Assembly: GCF_963506605.1 (NCBI RefSeq)
Contig: NC_083277.1
Coordinates: forward strand, 86,180,001-86,244,000
Length of the DNA stretch: 64,000 nt
Direction of reading: 5' to 3'
DNA from: Zootoca vivipara
Lineage: Eukaryota
Shown: positions 46,201-52,200 of the stretch, piece after piece
Numbering within the stretch: position 1 is the first letter of the stretch
Layout: each line of letters begins with the position of its first letter
The notes under the pieces: model-generated
The model's database searches: none
What the model was told of the DNA's origin: nothing
What the model saw: only the letters and a program-made list of their open reading frames with translations
Made by a program: the position numbers and the translations under genes

Positions 46201-49200
46201 CAGTTGTGGCATGCTTTCCTTCCCCATAATTTATTGAAGAATTCATTGATTTTAGTTGGCTAGTAGTGGAACACCTCTCATCATTATTCAACTAAAACTC
46301 ATTTTCAGTATATGCAGCACTGCTCAAAAACTACTTAGGTTTGATCCTTTATTTTGCTGTATGCAATTAAAATATCACGTTCTGTTACTTTAAAAATACC
46401 CCAGCTGCTCTTCATTGGGATGCTTTAGTTCAGTTTCCTGAATGATCTTTTTATCAGGCTATTGTACGTCCAAGGTCAGTGCTCCCAATTTTTAGAAGCT
46501 TTAAAAAGAGGTTATTGTGTTATGGCATTGTGCCGTGCCTGGAAATGTTGGGGTGATGGTTTGTGGCTTAAGGTGGTGGAAATCCTTGGTATTCTGATTA
46601 GGTGGCTCTTTTTCTTCTTCTAAAATAACAGGCTGAAATATATTTTTCTCAGTAGGAAATGGGCCATTCCATTGTCACGGGTGGGACACTTGGACCATGT
46701 TTTTTGGTATTCACACATGTGTAAGAATGTAAATATACATAAAAATTAACAACCAAAATTTGAACTATGTTCTTAATAAGATACTGAACATTTTACTAAT
46801 TTTTTATTATTTTTATGGATATTTTTGACAATTTTATTAAATGTTAAAGTATTGTCACGGGTGGGACAAAAAAAGGACACGGAGCTTGAGATAAGTTTGA
46901 TTTATGGAAAAACTCTGTGAGTTGGGAGGTGAATCAATTATAAACTCAGCATATCTGTTTAAATCAATGTTTATTGGTTACAACTATGCAATCAGAAATT
47001 TAGGTTAAGAAATTTAATGATACAAAATTAAGGAAAAAATGCTGTCACGGGTGGGACAATGAAATGTCACGGGTGGGACGCGTCTGGCATACACTTGATT
47101 TAACATACAATTAAGGTTGTTAAAAATGGAATAATTACAAAAAAACCTTTTGCTATTACTATACTTACTATCTACTATAGCCTACAAAGTATAATGTTGT
47201 ATTTACTAAAATTAAAATCTATTTAAAAAATATTTTCTTCTAGTCCATCTCTGGGCCAATTAACCACTTTCAAACACATCTACATTTTCAGTAAATTCAT
47301 AAAAAATGTTCCTTCTGACTCGTTTAACATTAGGTTGGGGTAAGATACTAAGAATATGTTCAAACTGCACATATGATATGTCTTTTTCATCAACTTGAAA
47401 CAGCTTTCCAGAATTGTTAACTGCTCGCATACACATCACCTTGACTTCTCCATCATCTTCAACATTACTTTGGCATATTGCAGCATATCTATATTCAGTA
47501 GGCCTGGTTCTTTGTCTTTTTGTAGTTGCTTCAAATTCAACTAAAACATATGTCCCAATAGTCACTCCATCAACGAACGGCTTCACTCCAACCACCGGCA
47601 CATCTGTTTCATTTGTACAACTTGCTACACCATCTTGTTTTTCTGTGTCACTATCAGAATCTCTGTAAACATCAGAAACTTTTAACTTGAACAGTTCTGT
47701 GAAGACTACGTGGGTGGACTTTTGAAAAGAAGGTCCATAAACTAAACTTCTTTTGTCTTTAGCTTTAAAAAAATGGTTGGACTGCACGTTTGGAATCTTC
47801 CTCACCAAAGTCCAGCGCTCATCTAGCATCGCCATATTTGCACTGATATCAGTAGGTGTTAAAAGGACAAACTTCACTCTCGGTACTGCTTTTTCAGCAC
47901 ATTTAACAAAATCTGATGCTGAATTGATTACTACTCTCCTTTGTTTCACTGCATTCCAAACTGCTTGCTTAGTTAATCCACCAATCCCATCCACGGCACC
48001 CTTGCCGTGGGATGTAGCAAAAAAAACCCATTCCCCATCAACACCAAAGTCTTCAGGCATAAAACACAGATTGGACAGTGTGTACTTATTTTTGAACTGA
48101 CCAGCACACCCATCAGAAAAGATTTTGACCTTTGTCAGTCTGTTAAATTCTTTCTTAAGTTCTTCAATTATGGCTTTTAGGCATGCATATACTGAGTATT
48201 TGTCGTGGGTTAAGTGATCCAAAACCACGGCAAAAGAACGTACTTTGCCTTGAGTCCAAGCGCAACCAGTAAATACTGTGATTTGGTTGTGGGTCCAGTG
48301 TGCACTTTGGATTTCATCTTGCGATGTTGCCAAATAGTTTTCAGCAAAATCCACTTGAAGAATCACCTCATCATCAGCTACTGTGTCCTTCATATTTTTG
48401 AAAGCTTTAGCTTGTAATCGCTTTACAAAGAAGTGCTTCTTAAATTTACTAAATTGATTTTGTAGCTCATTGACAGCTTCTTCTATGGTTCCTTTTGCTT
48501 CAAAAACCTTAGGCCGGCTAGAACAGTCATCTTTCCATTGCTTCCAGAAAATCTCAGACGACATGTTTAAGTCTTCATCAATTAGGGTGTGCAAATTAAG
48601 TACACACTTTTTGCATTCACCATTCATGCACTTTTCATTTTCCAAATCACAACAAGTAAGGCTCAAAAGATCAGAATGTGTGGAAGGAAAAAAAATGTCT
48701 TTCCTACTTATGGCTTCAATTAGGAAATTGAAATTAGCGTGGTATTTGCAAACGCAAACATTGTGTGGCATTTGAGAAGCTAAGTCAATATTTTTAGGCC
48801 TCAGTTCATAAAATTTTGATTTGCTGATTTCAACTGTTGGGTTATCAATCTTAAATAAGGCATAGGCCTCTTGGACTGTCATATTCATATGCCGCTTTTG
48901 GATTTTGATTCTTTTTCCACTTGTTGGATCTTTAATAGATTTGACATCCTTAATTCCTGGTGCCTGCCTGCTAATATCATCTGAATTATAAAACCCATGG
49001 ACCTTTGCGATATTATCTTGTGAAATAATAGAACTTTTGGTGTTCTGTTTAGGGCTTTTATCAAATAGTGTTTTTGACGCTTGAGGTGAACTCTCATACA
49101 CAAGCTTTCGTAACACGGCTATTCTTTTCCGTGGACTTAATGGCAACACTCTTTTAACTTTGGTAACAGCCTTTCCAAGAGATTGTGGGCATTTAAATGA

Positions 49201-52200
49201 CCCAATCTCTGGAATAGTAGTGTCGCCAATTGGCCTAGATTCTTTTTCTTTTATCTTTTGTCTGTACTTTCTTTTGCACTCAGTTTCTTTCCGTCTGTAT
49301 TCCATAAGTGATTTTGCAGACAAATTCTTTACCAACTTCATCTTTTCTCGCCTCTTCTTATCTCTGACCCTCTCCTTTTCTTTGAAGCTTTCACATTTGT
49401 TTTTATCTTGTTTTAGTTTTTCACGCAGCTTTCTCATACGTTCTGCAGATGTAGTCTTTCCCATTTTGTGTATTGATTCAAAGGTTATATTATCTTTATT
49501 ACTGTATGTATTCGCATTAGGGTAAAGTAACGGTAACTGCCTTTATGTTCCAGAAGGAACAGCTACTATTGGTTCATTCAAGCAGCTGCATTTGGCTCCT
49601 TAGTCTTATTGGTTTCCACCAAAAGGCAGCTTTGTGATTGCTTGAGATTGTTCCCTCCAAAATGTATCTCTTTCTAGCTAGTTCCCCTCTCCTCAGTCCC
49701 TCAGTCTTGTTTGCCAGAATAAAGAATTATTACATGAGGAATCTGTCTCCTGTCTGCAGAGAGCTGAAATCACTTGCTGAAATCACTAACTCAAGCTACA
49801 ACAGTTAGCAACCTAATAAAACAAGCTGAAAACTGTCACGGGTGGGACAGAAAAAAATTATTAAAATTTCATGGTGTTTACATTAATTAACTGCATTTTT
49901 ATTATTGATAGGTGTGTTATACTCTAATACATACTCCCACAATAAAACAAACATAACCTATAAATTAGTTTTATCACAAAATAAACTTTTGTACCTTTTG
50001 CTGTCACGGGTGGGACACTGAAACAGCATCCCATTCAATAATAAAAATAAAATAGAAATAACTTACCTATTTAAAATTTTTCAAGTCCAATGTGTAGACA
50101 AAGTTATTCACTTTAATAATATACCAACAATGACAACCACAATTTTTGTTTATCTTTAAAAAATAATGCCAACCTAAATGAACAGAATTAAGCTACACAA
50201 TCAGAAAAGTGATACTGAAACTTCAAGCTCAAATTTCTCATGAAAAAAATAATTTCAAATTCTTTTTTCCTTTGGAATATTGAACTTTAATATGTTTAGT
50301 TAATGAAACTATAAGTAAAATAAGTATATTTTAAAAATAATTTTTTTCTTATCAGGCTCATTTTTCACGGAATGGCCCTAATATGGTTGTAAAAATGCAG
50401 TTAAGTGTTCTTACTGCATGACTTGCCAGTGCAATTTCTAGGTCCTGCTGGTTCAGAGGCAGAGCAATACACTTGGTAAGCCACATTTAAAAACAAAAGC
50501 TTCTGTACTTCTCTTCAAATTTTAGGCATCTGCTCAGACGAAGAAAACAGCATCAGAAGCAGAGTCCAGAATCTTCTGGCTAGGGCTTATCAGCTGCCCT
50601 TTGCTCTGGGTGATTTTTGCCTTCAGTGCCCTGTTTTCTTTCAAAGTTAAGTGGCTGGTGAGTGGCCTGCTTGGCAAATATCAGACTGCACTTGTTCCTT
50701 TGAGTGTAACGAGACCTGAATTCTGTTACATTTCTTTGTCATCTCTCTCCACAGGCGATAGTGATAATGGGTGTGACATTGCAAGGGGCCAATCTGTATG
50801 GCTATATCCGGTGCAAAGTAGGCAGCAGGAAGAACCTGACCAGTGTGGCGACCTCTTATCTAGGCAGGCAGCTCCTGCGGCAGGTACTTGGCATTTGGTT
50901 TGCATGACCGTTTTTCCTGCTTCCCAGAGTGTGTTTTGGTGCTTATCAAATGACTTTGCATTCCTTGAATTCATTGTGGCCCAGATATTGGCAGACTTTT
51001 TGAATTCAGTCTAAATCACAGTATGATCTGGCTCTTCCACAACTGGAAAGAGAATTTGTTCTGGGCTTCAAAGGTACATTACTTCACAATTTTTCCTCTG
51101 CCTTACCCTTCTGAGAAAGTAAAGTGCAGGATCTTTAATGTGCCCTGTTCTGCAGTTTGCTAGGCACCTGGAACCATGTTGGAGAAAGTAGAATTGTTTC
51201 CTCAATGCCTGTGGCTTAATGACCACCTTGAGAAAGACAACAAGCCTTTCTGTACATCTCCCAGTGCTCATCCTTGGCTTTTCCCATACCTCCTTTCCTA
51301 TTCCGTGAGGCAGGAGGGCACATCCTTTTGGGGCCCCAGGACCTTGTGAGTTTGGGGCCACATTGCCTTCTCCACACTCATTCACCCTCTCGGGGATGAG
51401 TAGTTTTAAACCCCTCCTACCAGCATGTCAACATCGCATTGAGCCACCCAGCTGATTGGCTCTGGGAAGAGTATGCTCATCAGATCAAGTCACGGTGCAG
51501 AGCACAGTAACCTTTCTCATATTAGAATATCCTCCCTGCTTCTTAACCTTAGACTTTCAGATGTGTAGCTGTATATAAAAGAAAGTATGGCATAGTTCAT
51601 AAGAGTGCTCAGCTACGAAGCTCCCTGAGTAAACTTGGGGCCACTTCTCCACTCTCGGCCTAACCTACCTCTCACATGGTTGTTGTGAAGATAAAGTGGG
51701 ATAAGCCCCATGTAGTTCCTTGGAGCCCCCTGAATTCCTTAGAGGAAAAGTCCAAATATAACAAAATCAATCCAGCCATCTGTAATTTGGGTCATTCCCT
51801 TCTGTTTCTTCCTCCTCATTCCTCTTATTCCTGATGTTGCCTGGCCTATTGATAAATGCTAATACATCATTGTTTCTCTGAAAAGGTGTGTGGCTTCCAT
51901 CTTTTCGGATCTTTCTATAGGGCATTATTTCTCAAAGCCTTGACCATGCAAAGTTTGTAACAGTTTTTAATTGGTCCGGAAAATAATAGGCTGCTTCAGG
52001 GTTTTCAACATAAGGCCCATCCACACTTATATCATTTTAAAAATAGGTTTCCATGTCTCATAGAGTGAAAATGATGCACAGCTAATTATCCATAAGTGAG
52101 GTTCAGAATTCTGAGATCCAGGGTTTCTCAATGAGAAGTTACACATTAAGCAATACTAGATGATTAACAATTAGTTCAGCATGTCTTCTGATAACAGAGG

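Follow-up and report, generated by a model that had tools for sequence, protein, structure and literature searches.

A full-length Sola2-type DNA transposon in a TVP23-family intron of the lizard Zootoca vivipara, with evidence for horizontal acquisition of its family

Sola2 transposons, reportedly described by Bao et al. in 2009, are among the least studied of the cut-and-paste superfamilies, and to our knowledge no member has a solved structure or demonstrated transposition. Short terminal inverted repeats (TIRs) beginning 5'-GRG are what we take to be a formal criterion of the group. Published Sola2 elements bear 4-bp AT-rich duplications (AWWT, AAAT and ATTT), and one of them, Sola2_DFa-2, starts with GAGC and displays the motifs MDFKENIALG, SDVLNH, WSDGAKHFKS and YHGKSDVD (PMC3627910). 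The subject of this report is a DNA transposon of 3,718 bp, with both ends intact and a single open reading frame (ORF), located at positions 46661-50378 of a 64,000-nt stretch of the genome of the lizard Zootoca vivipara (GCF_963506605.1, contig NC_083277.1, forward-strand positions 86,180,001 to 86,244,000), referred to here as the window. With a probability of roughly three in four, it is a full-length, autonomous-type Sola2 transposon inserted in antisense orientation within a TVP23-family intron, of a family that entered horizontally from an arthropod-related source, with slight later decay of this copy.

The described counterparts to which the element was compared are Sola2_DFa-2 and Sola2_PPa-1, of the dictyostelids Dictyostelium fasciculatum and Polysphondylium pallidum. 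As far as the available part of their description goes, the likeness comprises the motif order D-F-x-E-N ... S-D-x-L-x-H ... S-D-G-x-x-x-F-K ... H-G-K-x-x-x-D, 4-bp AT-rich duplications, short TIRs starting G-R-G-C and the lack of any Pfam domain (PMC3627910). The dictyostelid elements are 12-15 kb in length, contain introns and carry Fanzor, whereas the lizard element is compact at 3.7 kb and has a single ORF; its basic helical N-terminus, C-terminal β domain and fixed layout of four plus two subterminal sites find no mention in that part of the source. A second set of comparable systems is provided by the DNA transposons transferred horizontally into squamates, such as SPIN/hAT and the Harbinger-Snek elements of sea kraits (PMC8437027; survey, PMC7070016), which likewise combine a transposable element far more similar than the host DNA with a later burst of short non-autonomous copies and with invertebrate relatives, but which belong to other superfamilies. 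The name Sola is not mentioned in that survey of horizontal transposon transfer in vertebrates (PMC7070016), in a review of vertebrate transposable elements (PMC5381603), or in papers on squamate repeats (PMC6050309) and on horizontal transposon transfer in hydrophiines (PMC8872380), an absence from texts that is not proof of novelty.

Each end of the element is marked by a 10-bp TIR without mismatches, GGGCCATTCC at 46661-46670 and the inverted form of it at 50369-50378, and RNA reads derived from other copies break precisely at 46661. Its ORF begins with ATG on the minus strand and encodes 734 aa, far more than the runner-up in the 64-kb window (312 aa), and its GC content is 34.8% against 42.8% for the window. 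A partial site, TCACGG, directly precedes the right TIR, and relatives carry GTCACGG beside the same terminus. A preliminary description of this DNA, made from its letters alone, had proposed a Sola2-like transposon in a lizard intron with a 734-aa ORF, three catalytic Asp motifs, a Cys/His cluster, 10-bp TIRs starting with GGG, near-matching 4-bp AT-rich flanks (AAAT/TAAT) and a high AT content, and the present analysis upholds each of these points, the Sola2 identity without recourse to a curated profile. The features of the locus, with the evidence for each in parentheses, are as follows.

46657-46660, no strand: left copy of the target-site duplication, AAAT (sequence; empty site in organism B)
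46661-46670, plus strand: left TIR GGGCCATTCC, at the end downstream of the ORF (sequence; RNA read breakpoints; terminus of relatives)
46674-46687, 46854-46867, 47044-47057 and 47066-47079, plus strand: four subterminal sites GTCACGGGTGGGAC (exact copies; spacing in relatives)
47260-49464, minus strand: open transposase ORF, 734 aa (ORF list; family search)
47296-47550, minus strand: predicted C-terminal all-β domain, residues 639-723 (secondary structure of the AlphaFold (AF2) model; two-domain matches to integrases)
47872-48411, minus strand: predicted RNase H-like (integrase-type) catalytic core, residues 352-531 (AF2 model; VIA-align; invariant Asp)
48604-48756, minus strand: Cys/His cluster, residues 237-287, CxC..H..C..C..C..C (43-sequence alignment)
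49503-49808, plus strand: piece of a host long terminal repeat (LTR) retroelement, containing AATAAA (76% copy elsewhere in the window)
49835-49848 and 50003-50016, plus strand: two subterminal sites GTCACGGGTGGGAC (exact copies)
50369-50378, minus strand: right TIR, GGAATGGCCC on the plus strand (inverted-repeat match with the left end)
50379-50382, no strand: right copy of the target-site duplication, TAAT (sequence; empty site in organism B)
50525-50656 and 50754-50883, plus strand: two exons of the host TVP23-family gene (RNA reads; Pfam DUF846)

The host exons, read one by one, translate to a match to the TVP23 family (Pfam DUF846, E 2.8e-9), and are covered by RNA reads at a depth of 100-134, with 137 reads across their splice joint. 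Since these downstream plus-strand exons encode a TVP23-family protein, the element lies antisense within an intron of that gene. The neighbouring intron between the two exons (50657-50753) is very short, consisting of 97 nt with GT..AG borders, as attested by the 137 spliced reads.

The preliminary description had suggested comparing the orthologous intron for presence or absence of the element, and the insertion is indeed absent from that site in a related species, organism B. A contig from run X15 (organism B DNA) follows the left flank to 46659, continues with the three letters CAA and resumes at 50385. The empty site reconstructed for this genome, CAGTAGG-AAAT-ATGGTTG, aligns gap-free to the organism B sequence, CAGTAGGAAACAAGGTTG, and the net insert therefore amounts to 3,722 bases, or 3,718 + 4. 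This copy was thus inserted after species A (this genome) and species B split. Further termini were obtained from 80 related loci taken from invertebrate-associated metagenomes (25-44% aa identity), ten of which are complete and bounded by GGGNNATTCCA...TGGAATNNCCC. Perfect 4-bp duplications flank two of these ten, L007 (AGAT) and L031 (TAAT). The flanking 4-mers of the remaining complete relatives are unmatched, probably owing to chimeric contigs caused by repeats; L009 and L012, for example, have one flank in common and the other different.

The encoded protein is, on the strength of its modelled fold, a DDD/DDE transposase with an RNase H-like core. An alignment of 43 sequences sharing 29-55% identity displays D372 (within the motif DFAENY), E375, D451, H486-G-K-G489 and D492 as invariant residues. 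In the AF2 model, with a mean predicted local distance difference test score (pLDDT) of 82.9, D372 resides on β1 (366-378), D451 ends β4 (445-451) and D492 starts the helix formed by residues 489-507, and by this placement the three Asp residues would occupy the canonical RNase H positions. Searches against solved structures returned distant integrase and transposase cores only. Residues 352-531 superpose on the cores of retroviral integrases with a Z score of 12.0 and a root-mean-square deviation (rmsd) of 2.5 Å over 140 residues, and on the IS21 transposase IstA with a Z score of 10.3 (VIA-align); the list of Foldseek matches also includes Hermes. An N-terminal region that is helical and basic (residues 6-76) precedes the core and a C-terminal β domain (639-723) follows it; this β domain co-aligns with integrase C-terminal domains in two-domain matches. 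The resemblance to retroviral integrases and IstA thus extends over the RNase H fold and its canonical acidic positions (Z 10-12, rmsd 2.5-3.4 Å) and, for the integrases, to a small β domain following the core, but the sequences are 8-16% identical, DDD takes the place of the DDE triad, and the proteins diverge in the N-terminal region and the zinc cluster. The cluster itself comprises six invariant Cys residues (C237, C239, C272, C279, C284 and C287) and the nearly invariant H242, and judged by this conservation it probably binds zinc.

Relatives of the protein are abundant, with 10,498 cluster representatives found at E<=1e-3 among 1.8 billion proteins searched. The preliminary description had placed Sola2 mainly in invertebrates and aquatic taxa; those relatives that bear species names derive from terrestrial insects, namely a psyllid, a leafhopper, a stick insect, a locust, two Lepidoptera and Diabrotica, and from one sea cucumber, each at 34-53% identity, with no vertebrate among the named matches; matches in a protein atlas are confined to unnamed arthropod and mollusc clusters. 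Two relatives of about 980-1000 aa, P0143 and P0159, carry at the C-terminus a cysteine protease domain of the Ulp1 type (PF02902, E 1e-12 to 8e-17), and the fusion of a transposase to such a protease is known from some other groups of DNA transposons.

The transposase very probably belongs to the Sola2 superfamily, to judge from its sequence. The counterparts of the published motifs are DFAEN, a SDHLTH-type motif (family consensus SDxLxH) and HGKGAVD, and a by-eye comparison finds four motifs matching those of Sola2_DFa-2 and PPa-1 in order and with similar spacing. The termini start G-R-G-C throughout, with GGGCCATTCC here, GGGNNATTCCA in the relatives and GAGC in DFa-2. It is this agreement of motifs, spacing, fold, 4-bp AT-rich duplication and G-R-G terminus that argues for the Sola2 type. 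Assignment to a different DDE/D superfamily, or to an unnamed sister group, would draw on the lack of a Pfam match for the ORF, on a Sola2 comparison made without a profile statistic and on weak DUF7869 matches in some relatives. A Pfam scan of the ORF did return no family, only one chance match to EF1G, but Sola RNase H domains are described as lacking Pfam similarity (PMC5751038), and an empty result is for this reason the expected one for a Sola transposase. As the four ordered and spaced motifs, the 4-bp AT-rich target-site duplications and the G-R-G-C termini are all shared with published Sola2 elements, such an alternative placement is very unlikely.

Between the TIRs and the ORF, the subterminal regions of the Sola2-type element contain six exact copies of the 14-nt sequence GTCACGGGTGGGAC, all on the plus strand, where 0.17 would be expected by chance. 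Four are situated 14, 194, 384 and 406 nt from one end and two are 363 and 531 nt from the other, ORF-upstream end. Each of five relatives at 33-43% aa identity (L007, L008, L009, L013 and L028) possesses its own 11-14-nt subterminal motif at nearly the same distances, about 15, 195, 384 and 400 nt from the four-site end and about 363 and 530-548 nt from the other, and in most of the five all sites are co-oriented. The ORF of L009 runs in the opposite direction with respect to the two end types. Because the motif varies along with the transposase but the spacing is constant, the GTCACGGGTGGGAC copies resemble transposase-binding sites and are regarded here as putative sites of that kind. A layout unlike that of the other elements is seen in the upstream region of L031 (677-1075), where at least 12 copies of the palindrome TAATCGATTA form a dense array.

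The case for horizontal acquisition begins with a comparison of species A and B. Over the ORF and the region upstream of it, the family contigs of organism B show 21 differences from this copy in 2279 positions (0.92%), whereas the orthologous flanks of the two species differ at 129 of 2195 (5.9%; Fisher p = 7e-22 vs element). Vertical descent from the common ancestor of A and B is excluded by this contrast. Selection on the protein cannot account for the low divergence of the element, since its non-coding parts are equally similar, with 5 differences in 424 positions (1.2%) at 49761-50184. In organism B, the terminal regions reach a summed contig depth, which does not equal copy number, of about 9,400-9,900 against 5.6 in the flanks, an excess of ~1,700-fold. 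Deletion joints at 47060>47676 (depth 2,232) and 47797>50293 (depth 386) indicate that organism B has many short, deleted derivatives resembling miniature inverted-repeat transposable elements.

These same observations bear on the opposite notion, that the family is old and was inherited vertically or that the ORF is a domesticated gene, present once and held under selection at this locus. The ORF is still open, as either would have it, but the related species lacks the insertion at the orthologous site, the family exists in multiple copies with many deletion derivatives, and the non-coding parts are as conserved as the coding ones. The transposase is almost untranscribed, which speaks against domestication, and the 94-95% aa identity to the nearest database copies, lower than the ~97.5% DNA identity seen in other runs, fits neutral decay, the two values pertaining to separate sets of copies. 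The empty site and the contrast between element and flank divergence led to the rejection of both domestication and vertical inheritance, each of which is scarcely credible.

Close copies of the family occur further afield, in two RNA metatranscriptome studies represented by runs X17 and X18 (organism C) and X19 and X20 (labelled 'insect metagenome'). Organism C differs from this copy at 85 of 3334 positions and the insect metagenome at 74 of 2904, each equivalent to ~97.5% identity, and both show even depth along the element with no excess at the termini. Bearing on the origin of these copies is an insert of ~300 bp at ~49503-49808 that is foreign to the transposon family and separates the start codon from the upstream sites. 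A related LTR-like repeat, 76% identical, is located on the minus strand at 31818-32098 of the window, adjoined by TGGCGAC, which resembles a primer-binding site; with this copy and its own AATAAA content, the insert is identified as a fragment of a host LTR retroelement. The 31.8-kb copy runs on into the primer-binding-site-like sequence TGGCGACGAGGATGGGATCC and thus resembles a retroelement 5' LTR, and the copy in the transposon retains the LTR plus just a few bases of the primer-binding-site-like region. In organism B, the LTR piece is found at very high depth and with flanks of its own. It is present in the element of organism C and absent from the insect-metagenome version, in which one X19 contig reaches 49804 from 155 nt of unlike sequence and a second passes directly from 49466 to 50067.

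The metatranscriptome copies could conceivably be lizard material (blood meals, prey or cross-contamination), with hybridisation or introgression among lizards explaining the low divergence between A and B and with no recent transfer across phyla. Host nucleic acids do occur in blood-feeding arthropods, the two lizards are close (about 6% intron divergence), and the lizard LTR piece is present in the organism C version. Genuine lizard nucleic acid, however, behaves differently, for in both lizard DNA (X15, ~1,000-fold) and the RNA of species A (X21) the termini and the LTR piece are overrepresented, where X17 and X19 display even depth. A TVP23 exon was sought in the X17 and X19 metatranscriptomes and is absent from them, while lizard RNA (X21) contains this exon in at least 50-fold excess over the ORF, and X19 has other sequence in place of the high-copy LTR piece. 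The even depth, the missing host exon and the version of X19 that lacks the LTR piece disfavour a lizard DNA or RNA source for X17-X20, and the nesting of the protein among insect proteins, with no vertebrate among the named matches, stands further against this explanation, which is altogether unlikely.

That nesting is apparent in a maximum-likelihood tree of 24 rows, made up of the best matches and all named ones and rooted at the midpoint. The lizard protein is sister (support 100/99) to a Schistocerca protein together with an unnamed metagenome protein, within an otherwise insect clade, and the holothurian protein falls outside that clade. Viral contigs were scanned for a 16-nt site, with six single matches that are apparently due to chance, and by protein pattern, with no relative found among them and no lead to a viral vector. 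The preliminary description had suggested a young invasion, possibly by horizontal transfer. The youth of this insertion holds in that it postdates the split of A and B, and horizontal acquisition of the family is well supported by the 0.9% vs 5.9% divergence, the insect nesting and the ~97.5% identical copies; the donor and the direction are not so supported. An arthropod-related source is the best reading, and the insect-metagenome version, without the lizard LTR fragment, fits movement from arthropod to lizard. The LTR fragment in organism C could mean either that organism C is a lizard or that transfer out of lizards has taken place.

A more far-reaching proposal can be entertained only tentatively, namely that a lineage of at least 97% DNA identity is now shared by lizards and at least one organism that is an arthropod or associated with arthropods, moving both ways between them, and that the array of four plus two sites represents a general, undescribed rule for Sola2 ends. 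The insect-metagenome version would then be donor-like because it lacks the lizard LTR fragment, and the fragment in organism C, free of the lizard repeat excess, would fit transfer from lizards to another host.

The arthropod-to-lizard account of a Sola2 family favoured here has several points to answer. The two copies of the target-site duplication are unlike at one base (AAAT vs TAAT), and a 3-bp AAT duplication with one extra T fits the same arithmetic of 3,722. The likeness to published Sola2 proteins consists of motifs judged by eye, without a statistic or curated profile, and binding of the subterminal sites is solely inferred. The depth in organism B is subject to the limit given above, and a lizard-derived source of the X17-X20 copies, though made unlikely by the depth profiles, retains some probability.

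As to the state of this copy, it is well preserved but, to judge by its coding changes, probably impaired. Nine of the 14 best-supported listed coding differences have the same state in B, C and the insect version, and are hence private to the window copy, and several of the coding differences are CpG losses. Thirteen listed coding differences divide into 5 synonymous and 8 nonsynonymous, too few to show selection either way. The nearest database (Logan) proteins, P0001, P0121, P0123 and P0124, are 94-95% identical, with about 27 of 717 residues differing in the window copy; a frameshift near residue 478, at a run of eight A (48020-48027), disrupts both P0001 and P0121, and P0123 has an internal deletion. 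Three changes from CG to TG or CA, for each of which the window copy is derived, affect conserved residues.

R63C: family residue R, conserved in 32 of 42 relatives
S415L: family residue S, conserved in 40 of 42 relatives; adjoins the SD..H motif
R500Q: family residue R, conserved in 36 of 42 relatives; in the catalytic helix

The preliminary description had also cast this copy as a candidate for recent activity and as potentially functional, and here its view fares poorly. That the copy is still an active, functional and autonomous element might be supposed from its open 734-aa frame, perfect 10-bp TIRs, six exact sites and fully intact catalytic Asp residues. The open frame is nevertheless weak evidence of function, because stops arise from ~3.6% of weighted substitutions and a frame of this length survives 20 substitutions, about the number at its ~0.9% divergence, with 48% probability. 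Derived changes at the strongly conserved positions 63, 415 and 500, an RNA depth of 0-2.5 on the ORF against 100-134 on the adjacent exons (one RNA run, about 6% of reads) and the LTR piece that parts the ORF from its own upstream region also count against continued activity, which on this sequence evidence is rather unlikely.

From its anatomy, the 734-aa protein would be expected to cut at the GGGCCATTCC termini by means of a compact DDD site of the RNase H/integrase type, formed by D372, D451 and D492, and to integrate at AT-rich targets by a cut with a 4-bp stagger. It would plausibly recognize its own ends through lineage-specific sites of 14-16 nt, four plus two in number and about 180-190 bp apart. 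The family presumably reached the lizard lineage horizontally from an arthropod-related source and may have gained en route the piece of lizard LTR retroelement that adjoins the start codon on its upstream side. Many short deletion derivatives would then have arisen in species B, and the present copy, inserted after the split, appears to have decayed slightly, with an open frame, CpG decay at conserved residues and essentially no transcription in the RNA library sampled.

Here an amniote carries a family that is both young and compact, with the empty site as a control, a burst of deleted copies in a relative and near-identical invertebrate-associated copies, and these three attributes make it a clean test case for the crossing of a DNA transposon from arthropods to land vertebrates. 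Natural near-intact copies could be assayed, and the conserved spacing of the end sites provides a concrete hypothesis on the assembly of the synaptic complex.

Two minor observations concern the surroundings of the element. A piece of X17 (organism C) at depth 17 matches the left flank at 45946-45982, with unlike sequence on both sides (window 45797-45993), and is another widely shared repeat, unrelated to the transposon. Further upstream, at 42313-43585, the two strands hold three ORFs of 264-312 aa that overlap one another and are probably the remnant of another mobile element.

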